Shown here: positions 822 to 33,619 of the stretch, one piece after another | How positions within the stretch are numbered: the stretch's first letter is position 1 | How the letters are laid out: the number at the start of each line of letters is the position of its first letter | Assembly: GCA_024704765.1 (NCBI GenBank) | Contig: JAKMXF010000299.1 | Coordinates: 310,001-374,000 of the forward strand | Origin: Oopsacas minuta | Taxonomy: Eukaryota > Animalia > Porifera | Direction: 5' to 3' | DNA length: 64,000 bases | The notes under the pieces: model-generated | Database searches by the model: none | Told to the model about the DNA's origin: nothing | Seen by the model: the letters and a program-made list of their open reading frames with translations, nothing else | Program-made: the position numbers and the translations under genes

Positions 822-2147
822 ATGTTCTACATTGATAGCATAATCTTCTTTTGTATTCGCATATGGATATATTTCTTCATTCTCCCGACCGTGAAAATAC
901 TATTCTATATATTAGAATGTATTATCAATATTTCTAAGAGAATAACATTCTATTTACTTCCACAGCAAACTTTTCCATGTCGTATTTTTGAACGTGTTGA
1001 ATCTATGTATAACTACCTAGTAGGGGGTTATCGTAGGATTGTGGGAGCTATCTCTAACTGGATTCTCTCTGACAGTCCTAAATACATCGTTGCAAGGATA
1101 AAGGAACTAAAAACTCTATTATTTCTAATCGTATTAATGATCTGGTTTTCTAGCTCACTAACTACTGTCCTATTTGGTAATACTTATTTCTATTCTCCCA
1201 ACAAAAAGTTCGATTTTCCATTCTATTTTGACTACACATACCATGGATTACCTCTCACACAAATTGTCCCTTATGCATCTTCTAAAGAGATTATTCAATT
1301 TGAAGGCATCGAGCCTGCTACCATAATCCCACATGCTTTCATTGATCTGCAGGAATTGGACATCAAATTGAGTATCGGAGAATATTATGATGTTTCTATC
1401 AAGTTAGAATTACCGGAGAGTTATGCGAATCGTGATGCTGGTGTGTTTATGTTAAATCTCACTATGTACGCTGAAAACGCTACTCTAATTGCTACAGTTG
1501 GGCGTCCATTGCTTCTGAAATTTAAATCAAACTTTTTTACTTATATTCAAACCTTTGTTTTCTTTCCATTTTACTTTTTGGGTGTCATACAAGAAAAGCA
1601 ACAAATGCATAGCTTAATGTTTGAAAATTTCCAGGAAAATTTCAAACTACAGACTGAATCCATCTATGTATCCGTTTCAAATCCCAAAATCGAAATATAC
1701 GAATCTTCAATGCACTTTTCATTAAAACCACAGGGTCTTAATATGTTAGTACTGAACTGGCCATGGACAGCATGGCTTGTAATGATAACGTTAGTAGTCG
1801 TATCATCAATATTCCTATGTATTCTAATCTCACAAGCTATATTATTCATCTTAATAGATATAGTACATACTCGTTTACCTGAAGTAGCTGATATGCTACC
1901 GAGTAATGACGCCTTAATGCGCTCATTCCCTCCCTTACCTAGATACAGTAATGTTCCCCGTGTGCAAGAGGAATATCATACTATTGACGATGAAGATGCG
2001 AATGGTTTTATTAATATGTCACCGCTAAATATGAATGAAGACGCCATGACTCCACCCATTTCTCCACATGCTCCTGTTTACATCCCGAGGGAACCTGTTA
2101 CAGATACACTTGATTCTGATAATGAACGTTTACGTCAAAGACATTAG
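822..2147 (+). CDS. BSCL2: Seipin (lipid-droplet biogenesis ER membrane protein), intronless
   Basis: 441-aa ORF with hydrophobic TM segments flanking the seipin luminal domain (YDVSIKLELPESYANRDAGVFML, LKFKSNF..IQTFVFFPFYFLG..QEKQ, IEIYESSMHF, NWPWT). ATG is directly preceded by TTTTAG (816-821). Confidence 0.9.
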   Translation: MFYIDSIIFFCIRIWIYFFILPTVKILFYILECIINISKRITFYLLPQQTFPCRIFERVESMYNYLVGGYRRIVGAISNWILSDSPKYIVARIKELKTLLFLIVLMIWFSSSLTTVLFGNTYFYSPNKKFDFPFYFDYTYHGLPLTQIVPYASSKEIIQFEGIEPATIIPHAFIDLQELDIKLSIGEYYDVSIKLELPESYANRDAGVFMLNLTMYAENATLIATVGRPLLLKFKSNFFTYIQTFVFFPFYFLGVIQEKQQMHSLMFENFQENFKLQTESIYVSVSNPKIEIYESSMHFSLKPQGLNMLVLNWPWTAWLVMITLVVVSSIFLCILISQAILFILIDIVHTRLPEVADMLPSNDALMRSFPPLPRYSNVPRVQEEYHTIDDEDANGFINMSPLNMNEDAMTPPISPHAPVYIPREPVTDTLDSDNERLRQRH

Positions 2148-2297: not shown

Positions 2298-2629
2298 TAC
2301 AGTGTAACCTACACAAACTCGGCCTGTGGAAACGGTAAACATCTGGAAATTTTGTGAAAAAGTGCGAATTTCTAGTCCCATTCAAATGTACTTCTACAAA
2401 CGGGTAATTTGGCAGAAGGGGGGAACTTGGTAGCATTATTCGGCGTCCCCGTTAACCCGTTTCTAGGGCGTAACTAGCATTGAGGCAGCGGAGGCAACTG
2501 CTTTCTCGCTTTTTCGGACGTTGCCTCATCTCCCTACTGCAATCGCCATTAAATTGTGGCAAATATCCATCCTTGCCTCCTCACTCTAGCATCTCTAGTT
2601 ACGCCCAGCGGTTGTGGAGGTTACATGTA
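2298..2629. mobile_element. Tc1/mariner(pogo)-like MITE, family C copy 1, interrupted by a nested insertion
   Basis: TA|CAGTGTAACCTACACAAAC at 2298 and the inverted CGGTTGTGGAGGTTACATG|TA ending 2629. The internal sequence is collinear, in reverse orientation, with 5426-5600 and 62838-62995. Confidence 0.75.
2464..2608. mobile_element. Small hAT-like MITE nested in the family C MITE
   Basis: Perfect 12-bp inverted repeat GGGCGTAACTAG (2466-2477) / CTAGTTACGCCC (2595-2606). It displaces the right terminal inverted repeat (TIR) of the host element. No clean target-site duplication (TSD). Confidence 0.6.
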
Positions 2630-2663
2630 TTTATTCGATTTTTTATATTATCATCATATCCAA

Positions 2664-5417
2664 ATGAAGATTAGGAAAGAAATGGATATTCTGTTGTTAC
2701 ACAATTCTAATGGTGAATTACAAACACATCTACGCTCTCCTTCCTCTCATGGTATCAAAGATATACCAGAATATTTCCAAAAGCATTTTGAACTATTCAA
2801 AACTCATCAAAAATCATCTGACAATCCAAGTTACATTCAAGCATATAAACACACAATTGAGATTTTACTAATCAATCTAGATGCTGATACACTGCTAGAT
2901 AATAAAATTATAGAATTTCTTACGTTATGTCAACCAGCTCATTTATTTGCTCTCTGTATTCATATTTTGAAAAAGCCTGATAAAACTGTTCTTACTTATC
3001 AGAATTCTCTGACACTACTGCTTTATACTCTACAGCCAACCGAACTCGCGAAAGTTATCACCTCAAATATACATATATGCGGAAATACTCCGATTTCAAA
3101 CCAAATTGCTATTCTAAATCCAATACAGACATCTTTCATACAGAACCTATGTTCTATACCAGATCTTGTTATGAATAAACTTGCTAAAACTCTTGTAATG
3201 GTGGAATCTAATAAAGATTACAAACAATCACCGATTTATCCAGAGAACTTCTATACTCTTATTTCACAAGTAATATTCTGTATTCTAATCAAATCAACGG
3301 ACAATTCTGATATATTTATTCTGTTTTTCGCTTCTCTACTCAATCAAATTTGTTTATTGGGAAATGCGACTATTATTGCTCGATTTATTATTCAATTCGT
3401 GAACCGAAAAGCTTTCGCAAAACTTGATATATTGAAGGCGATAATATCAAAGATCTTACCACGTGGATTAGAAAAACTCTTGGAATCATTACTAACACAA
3501 TATTACACACCTAAATTCGGGAACACATCTATCTTTTCAAAATTTCTACTTGACCCCAGATCTTCTACTCGTGTTAAAACAGTACTAATCGATCGTCTCA
3601 TCATTTCTCGCCAATTTTCCGCGAAACAAAACCTTTTATTACACAACTTAATGCATTATATCTGTAATGAAGCTTCTGAACTGGGCGTTGAAGTACTTGA
3701 GACAGTGCTAACCGCATTCAAGTCAGAATTCTACGTGGATAGAATATCATTAGAACAACATGAATATTTGTGTAGAGTTATAATTCTCTGTGTAAGGTAT
3801 TACACTATAAGATTAGAACCAGACCATGGATATATTATTTTACAAGCTATAAAGGACGGTAATCCTAATAGAAAAGAAGATGAAGTAAGCCAAATTCCTA
3901 AAATATGCTACCCTAAGATTTTTCCTAATTATCCTCTCTTGCTTTTGACACAAAATGCCATTGAAATTCATCTAAAAAATACACGAACTGGTATCAAAAT
4001 TCATGGACAAGTAATAGGTGAAATACTGTGCGCTTGGCTCAATAATGATCCCTCAAACACTCTAAATTTTGGATTACCATCTAATGACCATACTGTTATG
4101 GAATTGAGAAATTTATTGACATCACAACATGAGAAACCTATTGTAACTGAATATGTAGATGTAACCATGGATGATTCTAATTCGTTCAATTTTAATTTGA
4201 TACCAGAACTACAAAAAATGTTTGAGCCTGAAAAACCTAATGAAATCGTATTTTCAGAAACGAATACTATATCAGCTGATGAGATAGATGCACTTATCCT
4301 ACCGAATACTGTAAAACCTGACAAGCCTCGGCCTCTTATAGAGATACTATCTGATAGCGATAATTCTGAGAGTGAAGATTTAAAACCATTTCCTTCTACA
4401 ATCGATACTCCTAGTCAAGATACCAAAAGTTACATAATTGGTATGGAGCCTATACCAGGGCCTTATTCATTGAGAGAATGTGTAGAATGGTTAGGAACTA
4501 ATGTTAAATCTAGTAATGAGGTGGATAATGTAAAGCGAATTGATGCCGCTTTGAATAAAGTAGAATCTTTTATAAGAGCATCTCCACATGATCTCAAGAT
4601 TTGGACTGGGAAGTTAGCTGAAATATTTTTGAATATCTCAAACGAATATTCAATAAAAGACATGCATATCCTGCGTTTAAATTCACTTGTCGCACTGTGT
4701 GTATGCAATCCTGTGGAAACTGCTAAATATCTTACTGCGGAATTCTACACTTTACATATTGTTATGCACGCGCGTTTTGATATTCTCGTCTCAATTGAAC
4801 GTGCTGCAGGTGAGCTTGCTAACATAAGTGAAAGCAAGACAACACACACACATTTTAAGATCCCTCTCACGAAATATCAACAGACCAAAAAGCAACCAAA
4901 AGTATGGGAAGATATTATCAAAGAGCGACTCAAATTAAAAACACGAATTATCTCATCTGCACGGAAGCAAGCTAAAATAACTGAGAATGTTTTCGGTGAC
5001 GTAGTTGGATATTTTTTCTATCCTCTCTTGTATAACTTTGATAAATCACTTGCTACTATGAATTTTTTCGGTGATGACGTTTGGCTATTTTGTGCTCTAC
5101 TTAAGACTATCGGAAGCTTGATTATATATGCTCAGGGGACAATCGCACTTAGAAAAATGACTTCTGCACTTTTCGAGTTTTTAATCGCTATTAAAACAGT
5201 AGGAAATTCTCTGGTTAAACAAGGTATGTGTTTTTGTATTCTCTGTATACTCGAAGTTACTCCTGCGTATTATATACTACCAGATCTATCTCCAGAGATG
5301 GAGGAATTGACTGAATACCTACAAGATATTTTCTTGAAAGATGCAGACCAGATAACGTTAAGGATGAGTAATGATACTCTCCATCAGATTAGTTTATTGT
5401 ATAAACAGGTCTATTGA
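2664..5417 (+). CDS. TELO2: Telomere length regulation protein Tel2 (TTT complex), intronless
   Basis: Acidic SDSDNSESEDLKPF segment, PYSLRECVEWL, FIRASPHDL, LRLNSLVALCV.NP, RFDIL..IERAAGEL, ENVFGDVVGYFFYPLL..FD. The ORF-track start at 2556 is a GTG inside the MITE; the likely ATG is 2664 (or 2682). Confidence 0.88.
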   Translation: MKIRKEMDILLLHNSNGELQTHLRSPSSHGIKDIPEYFQKHFELFKTHQKSSDNPSYIQAYKHTIEILLINLDADTLLDNKIIEFLTLCQPAHLFALCIHILKKPDKTVLTYQNSLTLLLYTLQPTELAKVITSNIHICGNTPISNQIAILNPIQTSFIQNLCSIPDLVMNKLAKTLVMVESNKDYKQSPIYPENFYTLISQVIFCILIKSTDNSDIFILFFASLLNQICLLGNATIIARFIIQFVNRKAFAKLDILKAIISKILPRGLEKLLESLLTQYYTPKFGNTSIFSKFLLDPRSSTRVKTVLIDRLIISRQFSAKQNLLLHNLMHYICNEASELGVEVLETVLTAFKSEFYVDRISLEQHEYLCRVIILCVRYYTIRLEPDHGYIILQAIKDGNPNRKEDEVSQIPKICYPKIFPNYPLLLLTQNAIEIHLKNTRTGIKIHGQVIGEILCAWLNNDPSNTLNFGLPSNDHTVMELRNLLTSQHEKPIVTEYVDVTMDDSNSFNFNLIPELQKMFEPEKPNEIVFSETNTISADEIDALILPNTVKPDKPRPLIEILSDSDNSESEDLKPFPSTIDTPSQDTKSYIIGMEPIPGPYSLRECVEWLGTNVKSSNEVDNVKRIDAALNKVESFIRASPHDLKIWTGKLAEIFLNISNEYSIKDMHILRLNSLVALCVCNPVETAKYLTAEFYTLHIVMHARFDILVSIERAAGELANISESKTTHTHFKIPLTKYQQTKKQPKVWEDIIKERLKLKTRIISSARKQAKITENVFGDVVGYFFYPLLYNFDKSLATMNFFGDDVWLFCALLKTIGSLIIYAQGTIALRKMTSALFEFLIAIKTVGNSLVKQGMCFCILCILEVTPAYYILPDLSPEMEELTEYLQDIFLKDADQITLRMSNDTLHQISLLYKQVY

Positions 5418-5690: not shown

Positions 5691-7232
5691 ATGATTCGAC
5701 GCTATGAAACAAGTCATGATTACCCTTCATTTCACTCTAATGAACACACAGTATCACTTGCTCTTGTCGGGGAAATAAAACAAGCTCTACTCAACCACAA
5801 CTTCAAATTCATCCTAGATGCAACTGCCTATCTGCTAATATTATTCACTTCAGCTCGTGAATTGGTTCGTTCATGTGTACTTCTATCCAGCACATATAAC
5901 CACCTTCCCAAGAACATAGTAGAAATGATATTGGCTAGAATTGAACGGAAATCAATGCTAATCGAGTCACCAGTATTAATCCCGCTATCAATTGAACGTA
6001 CTATGTATTTCCTGGACACTCAATCTTGGAATAAAGCAGGTAATTGTGCTATCACACATTTAGATAAAAGTCTCAAACATAATCCCCTATTGAAAACTTA
6101 TGCTGGACTAACACATTACATTCTATGGCAAAAAGATAAATTATACGATGCTGAATCGACAAGAAAGGGTATGAAAATTGGTAAATCAAACACTCATCAA
6201 CAACGAATAAAAGATATACTAAAATATTTGGATGACATTTATGCTAACAAGGGAGTATGGGATATTCCATTACATTTGCATATGAAGTTATTAATTGAAG
6301 AGAGAAATGATATACAGAGTGCATTGAATATCGCTAAGCAAAATTTGGACAGTAATAAAGGAGACCTAAATGCATTAGTAACATTAGCGATTTTCTACAT
6401 AGATTTCAATGAATCAGATTTCTATAACAGAGATGAATTGATTAGTATTCTAACTAGAATACACTACATCGATCCTTCGAACTATTTGATGATAAGTCTA
6501 TGTCAGGAAACTGGGATTAGTGAAGAGAATTCTAACTTTATTGTTTCCATAGCAATGGAATTTCTTGACTATCCTTGTAATAAAGATGAACATCTAATGT
6601 GGGAATGTTTATACGGTGCTCTTACTGAATTGAGTAATTCTGTGTTTGAGAAAGTTTTAGCTGAAGAATGGGCAGATAGGAGATCATGGTGGATACCACT
6701 ACATTTTGATATAGATAATCTAATTCAAACTTTCACGATTAATTTAGTGTTATCTTGCTATAAGGCCTTAGTACTTAACACGCTGAATTGGGGCGGTACT
6801 AATCCATATACATTAAAAGCTAAGATGCTTCTCGATCAGCTGACAGATGTGGATTATAATTTAGAGTGTATTTCTAAATTGGTTACATTAGTAGTAGGTG
6901 AATTTATCCCAGAAGAGAAAAGTGATGATTGTATTATGTTAGATTTCTCGAAAGATCTCACGGATGAATCTGAGGAGATAGGGATAACAGATGACGTGGA
7001 ATTGATACCTGTACCTCTCGCGAAAAAGACCAAGTTCTTCCAGCAAGAGGATCTAGCTGCGTATTGCTATATATCAGATCAGTGTTTGGTAAAACAGGAG
7101 ATAGAACGATTATTCTATTTAAGGAGGTATAAAGCTATGGGGCCTCCTAACAACGAGACTGAACCAATGGAATCTGATAATGAATGTTCTCATTTAAGTT
7201 TAGATAATAATGGTTCTGATAGTAGTCAGTAA
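5691..7232 (+). CDS. TAF1A: TBP-associated factor RNA polymerase I subunit A (SL1 complex), intronless
   Basis: 513 aa. The motifs EFLDYPCNKDEHLMWECL and EEWADRRSWWIPLHF...LSCYKALV resemble TAF1A (LDFAGC...AW; EEWNSRKNWWPGFHF...ACEKAFV). Confidence 0.75.
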   Translation: MIRRYETSHDYPSFHSNEHTVSLALVGEIKQALLNHNFKFILDATAYLLILFTSARELVRSCVLLSSTYNHLPKNIVEMILARIERKSMLIESPVLIPLSIERTMYFLDTQSWNKAGNCAITHLDKSLKHNPLLKTYAGLTHYILWQKDKLYDAESTRKGMKIGKSNTHQQRIKDILKYLDDIYANKGVWDIPLHLHMKLLIEERNDIQSALNIAKQNLDSNKGDLNALVTLAIFYIDFNESDFYNRDELISILTRIHYIDPSNYLMISLCQETGISEENSNFIVSIAMEFLDYPCNKDEHLMWECLYGALTELSNSVFEKVLAEEWADRRSWWIPLHFDIDNLIQTFTINLVLSCYKALVLNTLNWGGTNPYTLKAKMLLDQLTDVDYNLECISKLVTLVVGEFIPEEKSDDCIMLDFSKDLTDESEEIGITDDVELIPVPLAKKTKFFQQEDLAAYCYISDQCLVKQEIERLFYLRRYKAMGPPNNETEPMESDNECSHLSLDNNGSDSSQ

Positions 7233-7321
7233 TAAACAGTTTTATACAATTTTCGATGGTATTTTCATTGGAAAATTAAGGTAATTAACTTGAATATTAG
7301 TTTGTATGTTTGTTTATCATA

Positions 7322-7460
7322 TACTATTAACTCCATTATAACGAGCACGGATGTATCGAAGTCTAAGATTGTACAAATATGGTCCTAAACGATTACACTT
7401 TTATACCGAAGTAATTATCGTGGTCTCTTAAGCTTCGATATAACGGGAATAGGCTGTGTA
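7322..7460. mobile_element. pogo/Tigger-like MITE family A
   Basis: Carries the family-diagnostic internal motifs TTGTACAAATATGGTC and CTTAAGCTTCGATATAACGGG; TIRs are decayed. Confidence 0.65.
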
Positions 7461-7497
7461 TTACAAATACTTTTTGTATATTTTAAAGATTAGATAA

Positions 7498-10400
7498 ATG
7501 TCTCAATCCTACAAAGATACTATCATTGAAGTATGGCATTTATTGAGTCGTACATACCTCTATATGAACGCTAAGATAAAGATTCACCTCAGATCAAAGT
7601 ACGCATACAATCTTCGTGATACATACTCTCAATTAACTATCATAGAGAATACTTTACCTAACATGCAGATTCACCCTCTGAAGAGTATGACGTATGCTCA
7701 CTCGATTCTAGATAGGACAAATAAACAGATATTTCCTTTAGAGGAAAATTTATTGAGTACACCTGGCCAGCTGTTCCTGGCTATTGGGCAGATCGGTACA
7801 GGGAAAACTTGGCTTGCACGTCATATAAGTACCTTATGGGCTAATGACCTGATTAATGAAGGCAAAAATATTTTGATATACATTGACTGTGAACTTCCTG
7901 AAGTAAAATCTGCTAAAGATATTCAGACTTGCATATCTTCATTGCGCACGAAAGGTACAAATTTTGTGGATTATTTTGAGCATTTATTCGTGAAAGATGG
8001 TCAAAATCTCATATTTATAATAGATGCATATGACGTATTGCTACGTTATGTTCCTAATAGCCCTCTACACGAACTTGTTAGAAGGAAGATCTTATCAAAA
8101 TCTTCTATTTTGATACTCTCTCGACCTTGTGTGCACTTCTATAACGAAATGAATACAACTTATTTGAACTATACCAAGCTTGAAGTTCTTGGTTTTTCTA
8201 GCAAAATTTGCAATGAATATTTTACCAAATCCTCAATTAAATTGCTAGAAGGATCACAAGCTGTTTTTGTATTTTTAAACATATTTCCTGATCTCAGACA
8301 ATTCGCAAGGTTCCCTCTCATAGCATTCTCTATTATAAAATTAGTTAGTATTGAGAATCTAGAACAATTCGTATCTGTTGATTACATAATGAAACATATT
8401 TGTGTGATAATTATCAACCAACAGCTTAGCCATTATTTAACCGGTGATATCAAATCTCAATACTTGAATATTGTAAGTTTAAATAGCGTATCGAGAAGTA
8501 AATTCCATTCTCTGGGGCATTTATACAAAACTGCTTATCAAGGATTACTCGACTCGTTCAATACAGTACAACAAGATATTCCAACGTTTCATGAAGGGTT
8601 TGCACCGGATGGCATGGGTATTTATTGTACTAATTTCATACAAGTTAATAGCGAATGGAAGCCTCGGTACACGTTTATTAACTTGATAACACAGGAGTTT
8701 CTCGCTGCTTTATACACCAAAGGAAATTTGAAGTCAGGCCAGGAAGAAAGCTATGAAAAAACATTACCGATCTTGCAAAAGAAAACCATTCCCCACTTCA
8801 TGATTCTTGGGTGTAGTAAAGAGTTATTATTAAACGAAGAAGGCAAAGATATTTTCCATTTCTATTTACCTCAACTCAATAATTCCCTCACAATATACGC
8901 TCTATTGCTCAACATTATTATTGAATGCGGGTTTGTACACTATCAGAAAATCAGTGCTACCTTATTATTCCCTTCAAATACAATTGAATTATTAGATTAT
9001 CCAATGGAAGGATGGATATTGAGAGGTGTATCATATTTCCTCAACAAGATTTCGAATTTTACTTCTTTGACCTTTTCAAATTGTTCCATTACAGACCAAA
9101 TTTTGTACTTTTTGATTACAAACATGAATATTAATTCAAACATAACTTTTGTTAATTTACAAGGTAACAAACTCACAGATTCTTCAATCCCGATTATCCG
9201 TAACTCATTTCGTCATATTCTATCTTCTCTACGTAAACTTGACTTAAGTAATAATTCTATAGACGCGAGCCAGGTTATATCTCTCGAATCAGATTTCCCT
9301 CAAATCGAGTTTATCTCACACCAAACTATTCCTCAAGAAATACTCAGTCGAGGAGAAGAATTTGTTTATCAGTACCAACTAGCTTGTAACGAAGGCAGTC
9401 AACAGATTAAGTTCTTTCGTCTTATGGTAGTTGGTTCTGAGGGTGTAGGTAAAACTAGCTTGTTAAAAGCCTTGAGAAATCAACCGTTTGAAGGGAAAGA
9501 AGTTTCTACTGATTTTATAGAAAAAACTGATATTACTATTACGGAATTGAGTAATGACTGGAGTCAGAATCTGAGTTTTAAAGAAAGGCTCAAAGAAACA
9601 CGAGATGATATTTTAGCTCATATAACTGTCAAACGTGTCAAATCACTCACAAACCTGTCAAATTTGGCAGATAATACAAATCTCAGTGAATTGATACTTC
9701 AACCTGAGAGTAACACTGATCTTGATACCGGCCAGATTGATGAAAATACTAACTTAAATTTTACAAAATCTGAGCCAGATTTAGTGCTAGAAAATGATAA
9801 AATTCCAGAAGAAACAAAATTGGAATCTCCTACTATAGAATCTCAACCAGAGGAGATTGATACTCCAACAGTTGAAATTGAACCTGAAATACCTGAAATA
9901 AAAATAGATACGAATGATCCAAATGAAGAAATCTCAAAAATTGATCCTCCCTTTGTTTCCTCCAGCATGCACTTATCAAATTTACCACTTAAAAATATAC
10001 AAGAACACTGGAGTAATCAACGTACTATACTACCAATAGAGTTCTTCACTGTTTGGGACTTAGCTGGACAATCCTATTTCTTCTGTATGCACTCCCTATT
10101 CCTGACCCCCAGGGCTGTATACTTAATGCCAGTCGATTTATCAGTTAACCTAAAAGAGCCTGTGTTACAGAGAAAGAGGGAAACGGGCAGATTAGACAGA
10201 CGTGAAATAAAAGGTAAAGTAACACATCTTGACATTATACAATACTGGATAATGACAATATATTCTGTGGCTAAATCTACTTCAACTGAGGTATATGAAT
10301 GTAAATCTCGTATTATTATTGTATTCACAAAAGCTGATCTAGCAGATGACCCTGTAGAGAAAGCTGCAGCTGATTACAAGTTAATTACAGACTCGCTATC

Positions 10401-11628
10401 TCGTAAGTGTAATTGTCTTTCAATTGTCGATAAGAATTATCATATTGTGAGTGCGAAAGATCGCAGTTTAGAGGGTTTTACAGCTTTGAAAGAATCAATT
10501 CACACCAATGCAGATCAAATTGGGTTTAACCATGCATTACCAGTTCGTTGGTTAGATTTCGCTTTGAATATTCTCTCAAGTTCAAATCCTGTTCTAGGCA
10601 AAGCTGATATCACAAAAATATCTGAGCAGACTAATTGTGCAGGCGATTATACCGAAATCTTACAGCTTTTCCATTCAATTGGTGTATTTTTCTTTAGAAA
10701 AAATATCTTAGTCAAATCCTTACAGAATCTATTAGACATAATTTTCCATGTGGTCTCCCCTATGAATTGTTTAAACTTGATACCATCTCTACCGAAAATA
10801 TCCAAAAGTAAATGCAAGCAAGAAAATTTCCGTCAAGAAATCGAAAATGCTTATACAACCGCGGTTCTTACTGATAACATATTATATGCAATTCTACAAC
10901 GTAACAACTTAACAGAGGTTAAAACCGAAATTACACAACTGTTAGAGGAATTTGGTGTTCTGTTATTCAAAAGCGGACATGGTAAGCATAGAGAACATTA
11001 TATCCCATATTTATTTAAGGAAGATATTACTGCGATATACCAAGCTGAATCCACTGACCAGACTATCTATTTATACTTCCCAGATAATCAAGTACCTACT
11101 TCTTTCTATTTTGCTCTACTTTCTTTATGTCTGGATAGATGTAATGCTTCAAAACATAAGAAATTTTGTAAAAATGAGGATAAATTCTCTTCAGATTGTC
11201 GGAAGCCTCAATGGCAAATGAATTTGAAAATTGATAAACATGATCCAAAACTTGCCTTTGATTGCGTTAAGTTTCAATGGGAATCAAATTTGACTTGCAT
11301 TTTAGACTTCACTGAACATCAGCCATATATTCGAGTTATTTTCCAAGACATAGATTATTCAGATTTGGCTGTACATTCAAGAATGTTCTCTCTTCTCTTT
11401 ACAATACAAAAATGGATAATACAAATTCAACGAGAATTGATATTATCCGGAAAACTTGCTAAAATTGTGCTTAACTGTCCTTGCAATTCATTTGCAAGAA
11501 CTTTAAGACCCTGCGTGTATTTCGAAACTTTCCTCAAACAATCTGGGCATGAATCTCATTTCTATTGTAAAGTTAAACAGACTTATTTTCCTTGGAGTTT
11601 TTTCAATAAATTTCTCCATTTAAGCTGA
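7498..11628 (+). CDS. NACHT-LRR-ROC-COR protein (NLR/ROCO hybrid), 1376 aa; probably the 5' part of a fusion with the downstream caspase
   Basis: NACHT: Walker A GQIGTGKT (7786), Walker B LIFIIDAYD, sensor-1 ILILSRP, WHD YTFINLITQEFLAALY. LRRs: VNLQGNKLTDSSI, LRKLDLSNNSID. ROC GTPase: LMVVGSEGVGKTSLL (9433), WDLAGQ..FFCMHSLFLTPRAVYL (10054), IIIVFTKAD. COR-like: LPVRWL, LQLFHSIGVFFF, LLEEFGVL. Confidence 0.88.
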   Translation: MSQSYKDTIIEVWHLLSRTYLYMNAKIKIHLRSKYAYNLRDTYSQLTIIENTLPNMQIHPLKSMTYAHSILDRTNKQIFPLEENLLSTPGQLFLAIGQIGTGKTWLARHISTLWANDLINEGKNILIYIDCELPEVKSAKDIQTCISSLRTKGTNFVDYFEHLFVKDGQNLIFIIDAYDVLLRYVPNSPLHELVRRKILSKSSILILSRPCVHFYNEMNTTYLNYTKLEVLGFSSKICNEYFTKSSIKLLEGSQAVFVFLNIFPDLRQFARFPLIAFSIIKLVSIENLEQFVSVDYIMKHICVIIINQQLSHYLTGDIKSQYLNIVSLNSVSRSKFHSLGHLYKTAYQGLLDSFNTVQQDIPTFHEGFAPDGMGIYCTNFIQVNSEWKPRYTFINLITQEFLAALYTKGNLKSGQEESYEKTLPILQKKTIPHFMILGCSKELLLNEEGKDIFHFYLPQLNNSLTIYALLLNIIIECGFVHYQKISATLLFPSNTIELLDYPMEGWILRGVSYFLNKISNFTSLTFSNCSITDQILYFLITNMNINSNITFVNLQGNKLTDSSIPIIRNSFRHILSSLRKLDLSNNSIDASQVISLESDFPQIEFISHQTIPQEILSRGEEFVYQYQLACNEGSQQIKFFRLMVVGSEGVGKTSLLKALRNQPFEGKEVSTDFIEKTDITITELSNDWSQNLSFKERLKETRDDILAHITVKRVKSLTNLSNLADNTNLSELILQPESNTDLDTGQIDENTNLNFTKSEPDLVLENDKIPEETKLESPTIESQPEEIDTPTVEIEPEIPEIKIDTNDPNEEISKIDPPFVSSSMHLSNLPLKNIQEHWSNQRTILPIEFFTVWDLAGQSYFFCMHSLFLTPRAVYLMPVDLSVNLKEPVLQRKRETGRLDRREIKGKVTHLDIIQYWIMTIYSVAKSTSTEVYECKSRIIIVFTKADLADDPVEKAAADYKLITDSLSRKCNCLSIVDKNYHIVSAKDRSLEGFTALKESIHTNADQIGFNHALPVRWLDFALNILSSSNPVLGKADITKISEQTNCAGDYTEILQLFHSIGVFFFRKNILVKSLQNLLDIIFHVVSPMNCLNLIPSLPKISKSKCKQENFRQEIENAYTTAVLTDNILYAILQRNNLTEVKTEITQLLEEFGVLLFKSGHGKHREHYIPYLFKEDITAIYQAESTDQTIYLYFPDNQVPTSFYFALLSLCLDRCNASKHKKFCKNEDKFSSDCRKPQWQMNLKIDKHDPKLAFDCVKFQWESNLTCILDFTEHQPYIRVIFQDIDYSDLAVHSRMFSLLFTIQKWIIQIQRELILSGKLAKIVLNCPCNSFARTLRPCVYFETFLKQSGHESHFYCKVKQTYFPWSFFNKFLHLS

Positions 11629-11637
11629 TACCTTCAG

Positions 11638-12761
11638 TGCTTGGATTATCATTCATAGATAAATACCATGGACATATTGTACAGAATTTGGACCTAGAGT
11701 TCATCCTAGAAGCTCTGTTTGAAGAGGGATTAATTAATGGTGAAGAACTTGCTCAAATATTTTCGTTAGAGAAGAAGGAAAAAGTTGAAATGATTTTACG
11801 AAATTTGCCGAATAAAGGGAAGGAATGGGCTCACAAGTTTTATAAAGTATTAAAGTCTAAGAGTGTTGAAAACCGCGAAATAAGGTCTCTATACGAATCA
11901 TACATAGTTGAAAAACTCTATGCAGAAGTTCCTAAAGGTGAAGATCTCGATTTCAGTCGATATCCAATACTGAATAATCCCTGCGGAATTTGTCTCATTA
12001 TCCATATCGAAAATTTTGATGACAATTCCAAAAGGCGAGGTTCTCATTTAGATTTCTTAAACTTAAAGCAAACATTTGAAAACATGAATTTTCTCATACA
12101 TTCGTACGAGGATTCAACTAAAATAGAAATGAGGAAAATTTTAACAGAATTACGCTGTATGGATCATTCGGCTTTTGACACATTTTTCTGTATAGTAATG
12201 TCTCATGGAGATGAAGATGAGTGTATTGTTACTCGTGACATGAAAACTATTAAGAAAGATACAATTCTTAACCATTTTACAGCTGATTCGTGTCCTAGTT
12301 TGGCTGGTAAGCCGAAAGTATTTATATTCCAAGCATGTCGTGGGCAGAAACAAGACCATGGAATAGAAATGATATCAGCTAAAGAGCCTGTTACAACAGG
12401 AGATGAAAAACTAACTATCCAAACAGATGATTTTGCGAATATTCCTGGTAAAATTGAGCATATTGAGTCCGATCGATCTATACCATCCTCTTCACAAGAA
12501 GTTCCGAAAAAGGTGGCTAATTTCGCAGATTTCTACATAGCACAAGCTACAGTGAAAGGTTATGTTTCATATCGATATGTTACTCGCGGTAGTGTGTTCA
12601 TCAGTGCTTTTTGCTCGGTGTTAAAATCCGCGAGATATCACCACCATTTGGTAGATATGATGATAGAGGTTCGTAGACAAGTTTCTATGGTAGACGTCAA
12701 TAGTAATGTACAGTGTCCTGAAGCTACTGATACGTTCACGAAACAATTGTATTTATTTTAG
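11638..12761 (+). CDS. CARD-containing initiator-type caspase, likely the 3' exon of the upstream NLR/ROCO gene
   Basis: CARD-like FIDKYHGHIVQNLDLEFILEALFEEGLINGEE...EMILRNLPNKGKEWAHKFYKVL. Caspase p20/p10 with catalytic SHG (12201) and QACRG (Cys at 12336); linker Asp sites IQTD and IESD; ADFYIA, GSVFI. The ORF-track start is a GTG overlapping the splice acceptor CCTTCAG (11631-11637). Confidence 0.9.
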
Positions 12762-13045
12762 ATAACGCTATTTATACTTTAGTTGAACAGATTGTTTATT
12801 TTGCGTATGATAATTATTAAAATTTCCTTACCAAGAATCCCATGATTTAAGTCACTAAATATTTGCTGGGAGATTTCCATGTTGCAAACTTTTGGGAATT
12901 TGTTCATGCTATGTAGTGCCATTGGGAAATCTGGATCATCTCATAATACATAACCTATTACAATATGTTCCTAATACACTTCAAATTACTGCCTAACTCT
13001 TTATCTTTTCGCTTGCAGTTTTTTCTTAGTTTAGTCTCCTAAATA

Positions 13046-13285
13046 ATGAGTAACAAAGCTCATCCCCCAGAACTAAAGAAATACATGGAGAAACGTGTAT
13101 CAGTTAAGATAGAAAGAGGAAGACACGTAACAGGAATTCTACGTGGATTTGACCCTTATATGAATATTGTACTTGAAGATACGATTGAAGAGATTTCTAA
13201 TACAGAACGTAATAGTATTGGTATGGTAGTTGTGAGAGGGAATAGCATTGTTATGTTAGAAGCTTTGGAGAAGATTATGATATAA
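13046..13285 (+). CDS. SNRPG: Small nuclear ribonucleoprotein G (Sm-G)
   Basis: [14 protein letters not shown]...[13 protein letters not shown]...[19 protein letters not shown], near-identical to Sm-G. Confidence 0.97.
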
Positions 13286-13559
13286 AGAATTCTATGTTCT
13301 TAGATTCCTTCCATTGCATGTCATATTTCTTTAATATATTTATTCTACACAATTAATAGGGTAGAATACATATTAAGCTAAAATGTGTATCAAAACTATC
13401 TTTCACGGTTGTACATACAAATAGATGGGAGACTATAAGTATTTACAATTTTAAGTGACAATTCTCAAGTATCGACTCTATAAATACCCCGAATGGGAGA
13501 TAGAATCATATGTACACACCCTCTTTCATGTATATTCCTTACTATTTATTTTGTATAGA

Positions 13560-15281
13560 ATGCAGAGCTTATCTAACATAAATTCATCAACTCTCCGATT
13601 CTACTACAAGATCAGTACTAATCTGATACCGATACACTTTATACTATTTTCTATTGGTATTATTTGGCTATCTATCCTACCTCTAGAAGATTACAACGGT
13701 AAATGTTATATCTCAGAAAATGCATTACTAGTTGGAATGATAGAATTGAAATTCTCGCAAGATTATAATAAAGCAAAAACATATACAACTACACGAAGCG
13801 ATTTGAAAGCACATGGAATAGCTGTAGAATACTTTGATAATTTACAATTTGAAGTTGCACAACAGAACTTTTCCATTAATCTACCATCTTTATTGGTGGA
13901 ATCTGGGGTTAATACGTATGCACTATTTCATGCTGAAAGGTCATCACATACAGAAATGCTCGTAGTTCATATCAGCATGAATAATCACCGTTTAACTAAG
14001 ACACAAGATATCGCGAATTTCGCGGTTTTCCTCGGCCTAGCAGACTATTTTTCACAGCAAAACTACTGGGCAAGAGACATCCTATTTCTAATGACTTCAC
14101 ATGATGTAATAGGAGTACAAGCTTGGCTACAACAGTACTTAGGAATTGCAGATAACTCACAAATACTAACTAGTCAATCTCTACACTATCATCCTGGGAA
14201 TATTATTGCCATGATTTCAATCAAGTTAAAATCTGAATTCTTCAATTTAGTTCGTATCAAGACTGAAGGAGTAAATGGAATGCTACCTAACTTGGATTTG
14301 GTTAATACTATCTCATTTGTAGCAATGAGAAACTTGAGAATGGCAACGAATTTCTTCCCTTCGAAATCTTTAGAATATAAGGATCTACTGTATAATACAT
14401 TATACATGGCCTGGAATCAGGTCACCGGCATACCTACCGGCCCTCACGGCCCGTTTCTTCATTACGGCATACAAGGGCTAACTATAGAAGCTGTTAATGA
14501 TCCTACAGTACGCACGACACGGCTTTATTCACCCGCTGAGCTTGGGAATTTAGTAGAATCATATATGCGTAGTTTGAATAATCTCCTCGAGACATTACAT
14601 CAATCTTTTAACTTCTATCTTCTCCCAGGTAACAATCGTTACATATCGATTGGTATCTATATTCCCCCGTTAATGTGTATCCTAGCTCCACTCGTTCTTA
14701 AAGCACTTGTATTTTGGATATCTTACCAATATCCTTGGCTGTCTGACCCGAATAATATCCCTCTTGATAACAAAGAGCTTTCAATAAAGTTACTGCATTC
14801 TAATCCTATTCCTCTAGAATCAATAGGTACTATTCTCTTGGCTTATACCTTGATAGTGTTATTGATTATAACACACAAATATTTGTATTTATTCCCAGGA
14901 TTCCCATTTGCAATCGTCCTTACAGTATCTTTGATCACATTCCGATTCTTCACAAATGTAACTAAGGAAAATGCACCGTTTTTCCATTCACTCTTGTTAC
15001 TACTACTTACAATGTCAACTGTCGCACTGTCAATTGTCAATTTCCCTATAGCACTAATAATATCATTGATACTGACAATATTCACAATATTCCCGAGATT
15101 AATCCCTATCTTCTGCCCGATTTTCATTCTAGCTCCTCACCTCACATTATTTATCCCAGATTTATCTTTCCTAGAGAATCTCTATCTAGAGTATGAGATT
15201 AGTCACCGTGTATTTGATGGTTGGGGTTACAGTGCAATATTTTTAATTCTGGTGCCTTTGTTTATATACAAGAATCCTTAG
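13560..15281 (+). CDS. GPAA1: GPI-anchor transamidase subunit GAA1, intronless
   Basis: YISENALL, YWARDILFL, EGVNGMLPNLDLVN, PTGPHGPF..YGIQGLT, LLETLHQSFNFYLL...RYISIGIYIP, multiple C-terminal TMs. The likely ATG at 13560 follows a pyrimidine tract plus TAG. Confidence 0.93.
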   Translation: MQSLSNINSSTLRFYYKISTNLIPIHFILFSIGIIWLSILPLEDYNGKCYISENALLVGMIELKFSQDYNKAKTYTTTRSDLKAHGIAVEYFDNLQFEVAQQNFSINLPSLLVESGVNTYALFHAERSSHTEMLVVHISMNNHRLTKTQDIANFAVFLGLADYFSQQNYWARDILFLMTSHDVIGVQAWLQQYLGIADNSQILTSQSLHYHPGNIIAMISIKLKSEFFNLVRIKTEGVNGMLPNLDLVNTISFVAMRNLRMATNFFPSKSLEYKDLLYNTLYMAWNQVTGIPTGPHGPFLHYGIQGLTIEAVNDPTVRTTRLYSPAELGNLVESYMRSLNNLLETLHQSFNFYLLPGNNRYISIGIYIPPLMCILAPLVLKALVFWISYQYPWLSDPNNIPLDNKELSIKLLHSNPIPLESIGTILLAYTLIVLLIITHKYLYLFPGFPFAIVLTVSLITFRFFTNVTKENAPFFHSLLLLLLTMSTVALSIVNFPIALIISLILTIFTIFPRLIPIFCPIFILAPHLTLFIPDLSFLENLYLEYEISHRVFDGWGYSAIFLILVPLFIYKNP

Positions 15282-20324: not shown

Positions 20325-21815
20325 ATGTCTATCCCTGACAACCACTTGATAGAAAACTATTTTTCACTCCCAATAACATCACAACAATCTACTATCACTG
20401 AAATAATAACAAAATCTAGTTATAAGCAAATACAGCATATATACTATCTAGCAAATAACTTACTTTCAATAGACATCGTATCAAAACTATCAAACACCGA
20501 TGCACTGCATATTCTATCTTATCTAGATGCACAATCGCTGTGTAGAGCTTCAAAAGTGAATCGTAAATGGCATGACCTAGCAACTAACGATAGTTTGTGG
20601 TATTTACTCTGTCGTGAGGAAGATTGGCTCAAATATGGGATGGAATACTCTTTAATAAATTCTATTCCATCTACTCCTATTTCTTCTCATATACCACCAC
20701 ATGCTACATATCTGATTGAATTAATGCAGAATAAAAATATTCAAATTTCTAAATGGAAAGAGATTTATATTCGCGCACATTTATTGAACAGGAATTGGAG
20801 ATGTGGTTACTATTCAGTATTACCACCATTGAAAGGGCATACACGTCGAGTTAACGCATTTGACTGTCAGGATGGAGTTATATTATCTGCTGCAGATGAT
20901 AGTTCTGTGTTATTATGGGATTCCAATACATTAGAGTGTAAGTTAAAACTAGAAGGCCATAGCGATTCAGTTAACTGTGTTAAGCTTGTGGAAGGTAGTA
21001 GATTTGATAGTAGATTAGCATTGACTGGATGTAGTGATGGATTTGTTCGTTTGTTTAATGCTATTAATGGGAATTTATTGAAAGCTCTCAGTTCACAGGT
21101 AACTGGCGTAGCTGATAATTGCAGTATTGAATTATTAGATTCAAACAGAGAATATATTGTGGGTGTTGGAGATGATTTTTGTGTTAGAATATGGGAATTA
21201 TTTGAAGATTGCGAACTAATACATTTTCTACCAGGACACAAAGATGAAATACAACAGCTTATATTAAGCGGGAATATAGCGATTACCTGCTCCTGGGATA
21301 CAACAATGCGCATTTGGAATGTATCCAAAGGTTTTAATATGCAAACTCTATCAACAGCTGGTGACCCTATCATGTGTTGCGATATTGGTGAGGGTCTAAT
21401 TCTCGGTGGAGGTGGAGATGGTCACGTACGTGTATGGCATGCTAACACCCTGAAGCACTTGTTCACTATGTCAGGACATGACGGTGAAGTATACTGTATC
21501 GGATTAAATAGTGACGTAATAGTATCAGGTGGAGCTGATAGTACAGTACGTATGTATAGTCATAGCGGTGTAGAAGTTGGAGTTTTTCATGGAGTGCATA
21601 TTGGAATTGTAAGGTGTGTTAAGATGCAAACACATCGTGCTATTACTTCTGGTGATAGAAAAGTCGTTGCCATATGGGATACAAATGCTAAATATTTGTT
21701 GAATGTTGTTCACCGTAATCCTACACTTGTTTTTGATATATGGTGTGATGATACCAAGATTATAACGGGTTCTCCTGATTCACCGGGTATTCTAACTGTT
21801 ATAGCTTTCTGGTAA
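20325..21815 (+). CDS. F-box/WD40-repeat protein (FBXW7/Cdc4-like)
   Basis: F-box LSNTDALHILSYLDAQSLCRASKVNRKWHDLATNDSLW followed by about 7 WD40 repeats (LKGHTRRV, LEGHSDSV, LPGHKDEI, MSGHDGEV). Confidence 0.9.
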   Translation: MSIPDNHLIENYFSLPITSQQSTITEIITKSSYKQIQHIYYLANNLLSIDIVSKLSNTDALHILSYLDAQSLCRASKVNRKWHDLATNDSLWYLLCREEDWLKYGMEYSLINSIPSTPISSHIPPHATYLIELMQNKNIQISKWKEIYIRAHLLNRNWRCGYYSVLPPLKGHTRRVNAFDCQDGVILSAADDSSVLLWDSNTLECKLKLEGHSDSVNCVKLVEGSRFDSRLALTGCSDGFVRLFNAINGNLLKALSSQVTGVADNCSIELLDSNREYIVGVGDDFCVRIWELFEDCELIHFLPGHKDEIQQLILSGNIAITCSWDTTMRIWNVSKGFNMQTLSTAGDPIMCCDIGEGLILGGGGDGHVRVWHANTLKHLFTMSGHDGEVYCIGLNSDVIVSGGADSTVRMYSHSGVEVGVFHGVHIGIVRCVKMQTHRAITSGDRKVVAIWDTNAKYLLNVVHRNPTLVFDIWCDDTKIITGSPDSPGILTVIAFW

Positions 21816-31753: not shown

Positions 31754-33619
31754 ATGATGCTCAGTCAGTTGACAGAGTTCTTCGAAAGCAAACCCTCCGA
31801 CAAGAATAAAGAGATGCATCGTCTCTTCAAAGATCTCCCAGAAACTGAGAAAATAATTGACGATTATTCCTGTGCTCTAGCCAAGGAAATTCTTATACAA
31901 GGTCGTATGTATGTGAGTCAAAATTGGTTGTGTTTCTATTCAAACATATTCATGATAGAGAATAAGCTAATAATCCCATTCGCTCATGTAACAGCTCTAA
32001 CAAAGGAGAGAACAGCCCTTGTAATTCCTAATGCTATTACCATTACAGCTAATAATGCGAAGTATGGATTTAGCTCATTCGTGGCTCGTGATATTGTGCA
32101 TAATATTCTAATGCTTATTTGGCAAAATTCGCGATCTTCATCGCCTCTAATCGCAATAGAACTATTCACATCGGTTAGAAAAGCTTGGGGTGTTCATATT
32201 CCGCAAGCAAACAGTGAAGAGGAGATTTGGGGTAGCTGGAAGAAGTACAAACAGTCAACTAGCTCCCAGCGTGAATTAGAACTCTCTACTAGTGTTGAAT
32301 CCCCGACTGAAGAAATTAAAGCTGGACAAATTTCTGTACAGAAATCCCCTGATATAATTCCCATAAGCGATTCCGCATCAAATTTATTAATCGATCAAAC
32401 ATATCATACCCCAGAGGAGAAATCTATCTCATCAGAGGATCTTAACTTCCCTGACAGAATATCCACAACATCTGGTGATAGTAGACAGTCAGATATCGAT
32501 GTTTCCGGTTTCTATACTGATTTAGAGACAACTTATATAGAAAAGAATTATTCTTATCCTTGTGGAAAGCTATTCAATCTTTTATTTATGGAAGGACAGT
32601 TTATGGATGAAGTTATGAGAGAGAGGAAAGGTTCTGAGTGCGATTATGGAAACTGGGAAATAAATCCGTTAGGTGGAAAGCTACGTCAATTACGCTATAG
32701 ATTAGCATTAAACTATTCAATAGGTCCACGTAGCTGTATCAATACAGAAGAACAAGTAATGTCTCCTTCCACTCAGCAAGATATAGTGTACCTCATTGAC
32801 GTACTCATCCGTAATTACAGCATACCCTATTGTGATAATTTCCATGTTATAACAAGGTATCTAATAGTCAGGACTGGTAGCAATGAAACTCTTATGAAAA
32901 TTACTGCCAAGATAATATTCACAAAGATTAGTATTATAACGCCAAAATCCTTTATACAAAGAAATGTGCTAGAAGGATTAAATACTTATTTCATGCTGCT
33001 TGAAGCTGCATTGACTAACTGGATTAAGAGATATCCTTGTGAGACAATTCGCAGTGCGAGTAGAGCTCGTCGTAGAAAGCGCGAAAGTAGAGCACCATTA
33101 CAACTCCCTCTTACTCCGAATAAAAGCGAGCCAGAGGATACATCTACAACAACTACATCCTCACCTACTAAACCAAATACTAACCTATTCCCATCCATGG
33201 TTCCTGTAACTCAAGAAACTAGTAATCGTGGTACAAACACTAGTATGCCTTTCCTAGAAAACTATAAATACTACGTCATGGCTATTTCTGTATTTATTTT
33301 CTGTATACTTTTTTGGTATTTATTACTAGGTTCAAATTCTACTCCACAACCTGATCCACAAGCCTTTAACTGGCCAACTAATCAAAAGGAATGGATAACT
33401 CTTGTACTCAAGCAACAGCGTGCTTATGAACGCAATTTCGCAGCAATAAAGGAATATTTCGCGATTGTACAGGAGAAGCTTGAAGACACAGCTAAGACTA
33501 TAGAGACTCTGAATAAAGTAACTGATGGAGCTATTATGAAAGATGCGATTAATTGTATGACAGATCCTTCTTGTAGTGAAGAAGAGTTACATTCTATTAC
33601 TGACACTCAAAATGAATAA
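31754..33619 (+). CDS. GRAMD1: GRAM domain/VASt sterol transporter (Aster/GRAMD1 family), intronless
   Basis: GRAM: LFKDLPETEKIIDDYSCALAKEILIQGRMYVSQNWLCFYSNIF. VASt: IPYCDNFHVITRY, PKSFIQRN. Single C-terminal TM and luminal helix. Confidence 0.92.
   Translation: MMLSQLTEFFESKPSDKNKEMHRLFKDLPETEKIIDDYSCALAKEILIQGRMYVSQNWLCFYSNIFMIENKLIIPFAHVTALTKERTALVIPNAITITANNAKYGFSSFVARDIVHNILMLIWQNSRSSSPLIAIELFTSVRKAWGVHIPQANSEEEIWGSWKKYKQSTSSQRELELSTSVESPTEEIKAGQISVQKSPDIIPISDSASNLLIDQTYHTPEEKSISSEDLNFPDRISTTSGDSRQSDIDVSGFYTDLETTYIEKNYSYPCGKLFNLLFMEGQFMDEVMRERKGSECDYGNWEINPLGGKLRQLRYRLALNYSIGPRSCINTEEQVMSPSTQQDIVYLIDVLIRNYSIPYCDNFHVITRYLIVRTGSNETLMKITAKIIFTKISIITPKSFIQRNVLEGLNTYFMLLEAALTNWIKRYPCETIRSASRARRRKRESRAPLQLPLTPNKSEPEDTSTTTTSSPTKPNTNLFPSMVPVTQETSNRGTNTSMPFLENYKYYVMAISVFIFCILFWYLLLGSNSTPQPDPQAFNWPTNQKEWITLVLKQQRAYERNFAAIKEYFAIVQEKLEDTAKTIETLNKVTDGAIMKDAINCMTDPSCSEEELHSITDTQNE

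Follow-up and report, generated by a model that had tools for sequence, protein, structure and literature searches.

Animal cell-death and innate-immune signalling relies on two main classes of nucleotide switch, the nucleotide-binding, leucine-rich-repeat receptors (NLRs) and the ROCO proteins, and the two systems have been studied apart, the one through inflammasomes and apoptosomes, the other through LRRK2 and DAPK1. The locus described here is an open reading frame (ORF) at 7498–11628 on the + strand of a 64,000-nt stretch of the genome of the glass sponge Oopsacas minuta (contig JAKMXF010000299.1; the whole stretch is called the window). It raises the question of whether both switches can reside in a single polypeptide and, if so, what they control and how they came together. 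An earlier note on this DNA had read the ORF as a NACHT ATPase and a Roc-COR GTPase separated by only a few leucine-rich repeats (LRRs), had seen no N-terminal death-fold domain, and had proposed a fusion of an NLR with a ROCO protein that carries its effector at the C-terminus, a further fusion to a caspase being treated as optional. These claims are borne out, the caspase included. The ORF exists as noted, with 1376 codons in which NACHT and Roc-COR are uninterrupted, and the gene as a whole is very likely a single intron-less ORF of about 1754 codons, spanning 7498–12761 when one base that is missing from the window is counted.

Domain content and reading frame of the gene

The best database match of the ORF is an NCBI protein called “Caspase-3-like [Oopsacas minuta]” (P0001, 1736 residues, 99% identity). 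Seven further proteins (P0002–P0008; 60–73% identity, 1717–1747 residues) possess NACHT, Roc, CARD and caspase domains and are encoded by uninterrupted ORFs, so giving eight orthologues in all. The two pieces present in the window were searched separately, and the full-length work was carried out on the orthologues.

The first switch is a NACHT-type STAND nucleoside triphosphatase (NTPase). Pfam recognises NACHT at residues 95–244 (E 4.7e-14; 53 bits, cut-off 26.7), and the module displays a Walker A motif (GQIGTGKT, residues 97–104, at 7786–7809), a Walker B motif (FIIDAYD at about 8014–8034, with IIDAYD at residues 174–179) and a sensor-1 motif (LSRP, residues 207–210). A phmmer search against the PDB returned NLRP3 over residues 88–246 (E 1.3e-5), and the top Foldseek matches of the N-terminal part, obtained with a low-confidence AlphaFold 2 (AF2) model, were NLRP3, NLRC4, NOD2 and NLRP1. 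The helical domains associated with the NACHT are followed directly by the LRRs, of which there are only 4–5. The LRR_6 family is matched in six of the eight orthologues (best E 2.9e-6), weak phmmer matches lead to the LRRs of NLRP2 and NLRP1, and the stretch is the sole well-predicted part of the N-terminal AF2 model (predicted local distance difference test, pLDDT, 75–92), with strands at residues 495, 523, 551, 580 and 604.

The N-terminal effector that sorts NLRs into the NLRC, NLRP and NLRD types, and which is missing in ‘NLRX’ types, was not found here. Walker A is preceded by about 90 residues (about 70 in two orthologues, whose start corresponds to M23), and no death-fold, TIR or other Pfam family was detected in this region at E ≤ 1 in any of the eight orthologues. 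In the AF2 model this region has low pLDDT and consists of a helix, a strand and coil, without a six-helix bundle. Residues 30–90 may correspond to the stretch that NLRs commonly carry ahead of the NACHT, for example the FISNA region of NLRP3. A death domain supplied by an upstream exon can be excluded, as stop codons occur in all three frames between 7233 and 7497, the gap to the preceding gene TAF1A is 265 nt in the window and 95–403 nt in the inspected orthologues, and the protein starts at a conserved position.

The protein resembles animal NLRs, both those giving its best sequence and fold matches (NLRP3, NLRC4 and NOD2) and the sponge ‘NLRX’-type proteins, in having a NACHT with Walker A/B and sensor-1, followed by helical and winged-helix parts and by ribonuclease-inhibitor-type LRRs. 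It differs from them in its divergent NACHT, in the small number of LRRs, in the lack of an N-terminal CARD, PYD, Death or BIR domain, and in the approximately 1150 residues of Roc-COR-CARD-caspase that follow the LRRs. Its caspase and CARD are thus in cis and C-terminal, whereas the partners of NLRs are recruited in trans.

The second switch is a Roc GTPase. Pfam Roc matches residues 641–689 and a second stretch (E 1.2e-10; 42 bits, cut-off 27), the Roc domain of LRRK2 is matched by phmmer at residues 850–885, and all of the top 32 matches in a PDB profile search of the Roc-COR region are ROCO proteins, among them MbRoco2 from M. barkeri (4wnr, 1.3e-13), LRRK2, CtRoco from C. tepidum and LRRK1. 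The domain has motifs G1–G5, and G1 (GSEGVGKTS, residues 646–654, 9433–9459), G3 (DLAGQ, residues 854–858, 10057–10071), G4 (TKAD, residues 944–947, 10327–10338) and G5 (SAK, 10450–10458) are near-invariant across the orthologues. They are preceded by a pre-Roc motif, IPQEILSRGEEFVYQY, at residues 611–626.

Between switch I and G3 lies an acidic, proline-rich and variable insert of about 125 residues (residues 721–845), predicted to be disordered and bordered by strongly conserved flanks. Because a ROCO protein of Strigamia has an insert at the equivalent Roc position, this feature looks like a family trait and not like damage. The flanks (9547–9663 and 10033–10056, residues 684–722 and 846–853) are invariant or nearly so in the eight orthologues (as in SNDWSQNLSFKERLKETRDDILAHITVKRVKSLTNLSN and LPIEFF), in contrast to the variable middle; they may constitute a regulatory or docking element inside the GTPase. 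Run X5, from a related organism (organism B, about 93% DNA identity), holds parts of the gene and has a 24-nt in-frame insertion behind position ~9827, within the Roc insert.

The COR domain, directly C-terminal to Roc, was recognised by other means. The earlier note had made its reading dependent on profile hidden Markov models (HMMs) calling the domains, and Pfam does call NACHT and Roc, but its COR-A and COR-B models match none of the eight orthologues, and COR was established by sequence and fold comparison. In BLASTP, residues 849–1086 align with Roc G3–G5 and the first half of the Pfam COR-A of the Strigamia protein (E 1e-13), the COR-A start LPVRWLDF being paired with IPLKWLKF, and a second segment aligns residues 603–668 with the Strigamia pre-Roc motif and P-loop. 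An AF2 model of residues 605–1366 (mean pLDDT 55, confident at about 260–620 and 645–710 of the segment) gave 34 Foldseek matches in the PDB at E ≤ 0.001, all of them ROCO proteins, including the RocCOR tandems 3dpu, 6hlu and 4wnr as well as LRRK1 and LRRK2. The isolated COR domain 3dpt was matched at E 1.8e-5 over about 348 aligned columns, with a template modelling score of 0.54–0.55 on the target. As the BLASTP alignment into Strigamia COR-A, the ROCO profile matches and the Foldseek matches to 3dpt and the RocCOR tandems agree, the presence of Roc-COR is confirmed at the level of sequence and predicted fold.

The pre-Roc motif, Roc G1–G5, the COR directly after it and the general layout of LRR, Roc, COR and C-terminal output are shared with LRRK1, LRRK2, DAPK1, MFHAS1 and the Roco proteins of C. 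tepidum and M. barkeri, which together have been named AP-GTPase-COR proteins by the Aravind group (PMC8195603). Unlike these, the sponge protein has a CARD-caspase and not a kinase as its output, its LRRs are of the ribonuclease-inhibitor/NLR type and are preceded by a STAND ATPase, its Roc carries the large insert between switch I and G3, and its COR escapes the Pfam models.

The CARD and caspase domains are found in the next ORF, at 11637–12761, which is in another frame and in which no in-frame ATG precedes the middle of the CARD. The caspase fold, preceded by the CARD, has its catalytic dyad of His (SHG) and Cys (QACRG), and in a PDB profile search the caspase part matched caspase-3 and caspase-8 at 1e-33 and also CED-3. 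At the junction between the two ORFs the window reads FYCKVKQTYFPWSFFNKFL in frame 1 and PFKLIPSVLGLSF in frame 0, a single-base shift, while the orthologues read straight through (FYCKVKQTYFAWRFFNKLLPFKxIPxELGLSF). Logan contigs of runs X1, X2 and X4, which represent one sample that is probably the source of the assembly, were aligned to 7300–12900, and all have, at full depth, a T put in behind 11614. This extra T restores exactly the orthologous reading. Since the contigs of three runs show the T, and since the orthologues match both sides in two frames, the window very likely carries a one-base assembly deletion, TT having been read as T.

The NCBI model P0001 bridges the break with a 53-nt GT-AG “intron” (11572–11624), at the cost of 18 conserved residues. 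Both this intron and a 41-nt GT-AG alternative (11597–11637) can be rejected, as the orthologues are continuous, the shift is of one base and the T is present in the contigs. With the break being an assembly indel, no intron is needed at the junction, and the public gene model “Caspase-3-like” is to be corrected, its intron being the product of a one-base assembly error.

One might suspect that an NLR and a neighbouring ROCO-caspase gene were merged by assembly or annotation, or that the locus is a pseudogene broken at 11614–11628, as the window taken literally stops at 11626–11628, has its CARD-caspase ORF in another frame, and required an invented 53-nt intron in the NCBI model. This is extremely unlikely and is already contradicted. 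NACHT and Roc-COR share one uninterrupted 1376-codon ORF in the window itself, a single ORF encodes the whole protein in each of the seven orthologues, which come from at least four other assemblies and match the window on both sides of the break, and a single T, present in the contigs of three runs, restores the frame.

All eight orthologues keep Walker A/B, sensor-1, G1–G5, the COR-A start, SHG and QACRG; the sole change in the NACHT motifs quoted above is a T to S replacement at the last Walker A position of one orthologue. Ratios of nonsynonymous to synonymous substitution rates (dN/dS) computed against orthologue P0003, which are rough because dS is saturated (to the extent that no value could be computed for COR-B), were 0.08–0.09 for NACHT, 0.15 for the LRRs, 0.01–0.05 for the Roc core, 0.08 for COR-A, 0.02 for CARD and 0.09 for the caspase. 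The LRR values (0.15–0.20) are the highest among the folded domains and still well below 1, and the Roc insert reaches 0.20–0.44 (0.20 against P0003), compared with 0.01–0.05 for the Roc core. With dN far below dS, the alignments indicate purifying selection on every domain. In the four orthologues inspected, from four assemblies, the gene is again one ORF and the order Seipin–TELO2–TAF1A–gene–LSM–Gaa1 is kept. Only one NACHT-bearing copy was found per assembly inspected, in this conserved neighbourhood, and no lineage-specific expansion was seen.

Origin of the fusion

A word-based search with residues 600–1376 found five shorter paralogues (P0011–P0015, 37–47% identity) in assembly ERZ20067936, which also holds orthologue P0008. 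All five contain Roc and caspase according to Pfam, which detects the CARD in four of them; in the fifth (P0015) the CARD is matched by a profile derived from the orthologues. With tblastn, the 7–8 kb upstream of four paralogue copies (three inspected and one neighbouring copy) yielded no match to NACHT or LRRs, and the matches of the four NACHT-less copies start at the pre-Roc motif, at residues 611–618 of P0001. In ERZ20067936 the NACHT-less Roc-COR-CARD-caspase paralogues form a cluster (L003, L004, L005) in gene-poor regions, and some copies look truncated; two of them, L005:7836–10838 and L005:15274–18120, are about 4.4 kb apart.

Other sponge relatives, 1445–1921 residues in length, contain Roc-COR and, in all but one case, a C-terminal caspase, and some have N-terminal caspase-like regions. 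One NACHT-less Roc-COR-caspase relative is the Oopsacas protein KAI6658320.1 (P0020), annotated as “Caspase-3”; the N-terminal caspase-like regions were confirmed in members from other assemblies and not in P0020 itself. The sponge ROCO-caspases (P0020, P0011–P0015) have the Roc-COR-(CARD)-caspase core in common with the gene studied here (37–47% identity, one clade), but are devoid of NACHT and LRRs, and their N-termini are either absent or carry extra caspase-like regions. Among them, a STAND ATPase occurs only in the subgroup of the studied gene.

Outside the sponges, the nearest Roc-COR relatives (E 1e-14 to 1e-32) are uncharacterised proteins of echinoderms, myriapods (Strigamia) and bivalves. 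The three that were scanned contain Roc-COR and Death, and two of them also Neuralized and TIR. Proteins of this Neuralized-Roc-COR-Death-TIR type likewise combine Roc-COR with death-fold signalling, and the Strigamia protein shares the position of the Roc insert, but they have neither a NACHT nor a caspase, their output being Death and TIR.

Of the separate phylogenies that the earlier note had called for, that of Roc-COR was informative. In the Roc-COR tree, a quick maximum-likelihood search with support by the Shimodaira–Hasegawa-like approximate likelihood ratio test (SH-aLRT) only, all ROCOs that bear a caspase fall into a single clade (SH-aLRT 100). Nested within it is the NACHT-bearing group (100), next to the NACHT-less P0011–P0015 (99), and the other sub-clade consists of the long proteins with a caspase-like-Roc-COR-caspase arrangement. 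In the NACHT tree the orthogroup stands alone on a branch of 2.24, which is uninformative on the donor NLR. The nearest NACHT relative in the word-based search (E 7e-6) was P0010, a 917-residue NACHT-LRR_6 protein encoded by a single ORF (L006:3001–5754, ERZ25067984).

Because the gene nests in a clade of NACHT-less Roc-COR-(CARD)-caspase proteins, we favour, as the most parsimonious, an origin by addition, in which an effector-less NACHT-LRR was probably fused in front of a pre-existing ROCO-caspase. The CARD-caspase was most likely already C-terminal in the ROCO parent. Two details of the earlier proposal have to be revised accordingly. Its effector is indeed C-terminal but was probably not moved there, since the Roc-COR tree suggests that the ROCO parent already had the CARD-caspase. 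It had also regarded the LRRs as a shared recombination point, but they are not demonstrably shared: the repeats are of the NLR type, and the paralogue matches start only at residues 611–618. From the alignments, the joint would lie just after the last LRR, with the ROCO-specific pre-Roc motif beginning at residue 611.

A doubly gated caspase platform as the proposed role

Our preferred reading, held with moderate confidence, is that of a single chain with a short N-terminus, NACHT, 4–5 LRRs, Roc-COR, CARD and caspase, formed by adding NACHT-LRR to a ROCO-caspase and serving as a doubly gated platform that activates its own caspase. Initiator caspases are activated by induced proximity on the Apaf-1 and NLRC4 platforms, and Roc-COR dimerisation is nucleotide-dependent. 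In the resting state, NACHT-LRR and Roc-COR would keep the C-terminal caspase either monomeric and inactive or in a non-productive dimer. Some signal would then cause the NACHT to exchange its nucleotide and to oligomerise, as NLRC4, NLRP3 and Apaf-1 do, and the GTPase cycle of Roc-COR would alter the dimer state, as in bacterial Roco proteins and LRRK2. Together these two processes could bring the caspase domains and CARDs into proximity, and proximity-induced dimerisation would activate the caspase in cis, with no need for a separate adaptor or recruitment step. The CARD may reinforce self-association or attract further CARD-containing proteins. That the Roc-COR binds and hydrolyses GTP and dimerises through the COR is proposed here from motif conservation, and the apoptosome- or inflammasome-like, nucleotide-driven oligomerisation that would activate the caspase is suggested by the domain content.

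The same parts, a STAND NTPase, a repeat sensor, a CARD and a CARD-caspase, make up the apoptosome and the inflammasome (Apaf-1/caspase-9, NLRC4/caspase-1, CED-4/CED-3). There the caspases are separate proteins recruited by CARD–CARD contacts, whereas in the sponge protein everything is in one chain with an intercalated GTPase; functional equivalence to these complexes is conceivable by analogy.

Of the possible biological roles, a conserved one in cell death or stress signalling, and not that of a fast-evolving pathogen receptor, is pointed to by the single copy in the assemblies checked, the fixed neighbourhood, the very short LRR domain and the low dN/dS. A classical NLR-like sensor of pathogens or danger, in which the LRRs bind a microbial ligand and trigger a pyroptosis-like caspase response instead of housekeeping or developmental death, appears rather unlikely to us. 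NACHT-LRR is admittedly the canonical layout of a cytosolic immune receptor, the fold matches are to NLRP3, NLRC4 and NOD2, the closest Roc-COR relatives outside sponges carry the immune-signalling domains Death and TIR, and the LRRs have the highest dN/dS of the folded domains (0.15–0.20). This value is nevertheless well below 1, only 4–5 repeats are present, and the sole NACHT-bearing copy per assembly inspected lies in a conserved neighbourhood with no expansion seen, while immune NLRs of sponges and cnidarians are typically expanded and variable (PMC12909245).

It might also be that, of the two NTPase modules, one survives as a structural relic only: NACHT-LRR would then act just as a scaffold or as an autoinhibitory cap, and the ROCO-caspase beneath it would function in the manner of the NACHT-less paralogues. 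The existence of such paralogues with the same Roc-COR-CARD-caspase core would fit, as would the high divergence of the NACHT (branch length 2.24, 53 bits to Pfam NACHT, a poor AF2 model). We consider this improbable, because Walker A, Walker B and sensor-1, which a relic would be expected to lose, are kept in 8/8 orthologues, and because the NACHT has a dN/dS of only about 0.08–0.09.

Several points weigh against the doubly gated platform that we prefer. The tree behind the proposed order of events is a quick one with SH-aLRT support only, and for the sub-clade of P0011–P0015 there may have been loss of NACHT-LRR in the sister paralogues instead of a gain here. The NACHT is very divergent (2.24 substitutions per site, no near relative in the NACHT tree) and could have an altered, non-oligomerising role, the Roc is interrupted by its insert of about 125 residues, which may affect the predicted GTPase function, and the 4–5 LRRs are far fewer than in ligand-sensing NLRs. 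The structure predictions suggested in the earlier note, which did yield COR fold matches and confident LRRs, are low overall (mean pLDDT 55 for the Roc-COR part and 49 for the N-terminal part), and the arrangement of the domains relative to each other is unreadable from them. Saturated dS makes the dN/dS values rough, and none of the sequencing runs holding the stretch is recorded as RNA.

In a bolder form, which we offer tentatively and with clearly less confidence than the platform itself, the protein would be a single-chain ‘cis-inflammasome/apoptosome’ of glass sponges, whose attached CARD-caspase would be controlled by two switches in series, a STAND ATPase and a ROCO GTPase, working as a coincidence gate. 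If true, this would be a regulated cell-death wiring known in no other animal, and it might replace canonical death-platform components that are missing from the reduced hexactinellid genome.

Distribution of the architecture and features of the window

The architecture is new, being built from known modules, and is so far seen only in the glass-sponge orthogroup. An HMMER search of 1.84 billion representatives was carried out with a profile of residues 85–1280, and among the best 150 matches the only one spanning the whole profile was the representative of the orthogroup; a distant protein with both NACHT and Roc-COR should have scored into this list. Local NACHT and Roc-COR HMMs run on 162 proteins found both domains in P0001–P0008 only, and a feature search of the ESM Atlas gave weak leads (≤ 0.82) to separate NACHT-LRR and Roc/COR clusters, none with both. 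A literature search (Oopsacas with NACHT, ROCO with NACHT, Roc-COR with caspase) found no description of the architecture, an absence that is no proof of novelty. No paper in the searchable literature mentions “Oopsacas minuta” together with “NACHT”, and in the literature searched no account was found of STAND ATPase and ROCO GTPase switches in one chain.

The only published co-occurrences of COR or caspase with NACHT that we found in sponge gene models are from Dysidea avara, namely STYK-COR-DEATH-NACHT-LRRx9 and PHD-NACHT-DSRM-CASc (PMC12909245, supplement). These differ from the protein described here in that kinase-COR-Death stands upstream of the NACHT, no Roc is listed, and COR and caspase never occur together; they are, moreover, unverified automatic models. 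In bacteria, the succession of LRR, AP-GTPase (Roc), COR and a variable C-terminal effector has been described as a general theme by the Aravind group, for whom STAND NTPases and AP-GTPases represent alternative switches in systems of death and immunity (PMC8195603, PMC7159879). Here, both switches occur in one chain wired to a caspase and kept under purifying selection across glass sponges. Such a protein amounts to a natural experiment in which ATP-driven oligomerisation is combined with GTP-driven dimerisation to control a protease, and it is relevant to the way in which domain shuffling built death platforms at an early stage of animal evolution. In a survey of NLRs in sponges from 2026, no bona fide NLR was reported for the hexactinellid Aphrocallistes vastus (PMC12909245); hexactinellids do carry NACHT-LRR modules in unusual contexts.

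The features of the gene and its neighbours are collected in Table 1. The flanking genes are ordinary eukaryotic ones, and the genome around the locus is compact, intron-poor and of about 34% GC.

Table 1. Domains of the NACHT-Roc-COR-caspase gene and neighbouring genes, in window coordinates
Feature	Coordinates	Strand	Remarks
Seipin	822–2147		neighbouring gene
TELO2	2556–5417		neighbouring gene
TAF1A	5691–7232		neighbouring gene, directly before the NACHT-Roc-COR gene
N-terminal region	7498–7767	+	~90 residues before NACHT; not death-fold; residues 43–90 conserved
NACHT NTPase module	7768–8937	+	residues 91–480; Pfam NACHT, phmmer, Foldseek
Short LRR domain	8938–9318	+	residues 481–607; 4–5 ribonuclease-inhibitor-type repeats of 28–29 residues each
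Pre-Roc motif and Roc GTPase	9319–10512	+	residues 611–626 and ~640–1005; Pfam, PDB profile search
Roc insert	9658–10032	+	~125 residues, switch I to G3; alignment, pLDDT <50, dN/dS
COR domain	10513–11571	+	COR-A from residue 1006 (LPVRWLDF), COR-B to residue ~1340–1358; BLASTP, Foldseek
Frame break	11614–11628	+	one T absent behind 11614 (CTCC, against CTTCC in reads), giving a false stop at 11626–11628
CARD	11649–11858	+	Pfam E 6.8e-9; residues 5–74 in the frame of ORF 11637–12761
Caspase domain (Peptidase_C14)	11985–12761	+	Pfam E 4.3e-51; true stop 12759–12761
Sm-like LSM gene	13046–13285		neighbouring gene, after the caspase end
Gaa1	13455–15281		neighbouring gene

Examples of this compact, intron-poor organisation are several long single-ORF genes of ordinary kind elsewhere in the window, encoding an F-box/WD40 protein (20325–21815), a GRAM-VASt lipid-transfer protein (31754–33619), a cytosolic 5'-nucleotidase (42012–43547) and an SLC4 bicarbonate transporter (46274–49336).

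A short dispersed repeat occupies the intergenic positions 7354–7450 upstream of the gene. The summed contig depth rises there from about 87 to more than 10000, and many contigs match the repeat alone, over 40–50 nt with an identity of about 90%. A 15-nt inverted repeat (7354–7368 and 7426–7440) is present, and the element looks like a miniature inverted-repeat transposable element; it is the sole copy in the window at ≤ 3 mismatches.

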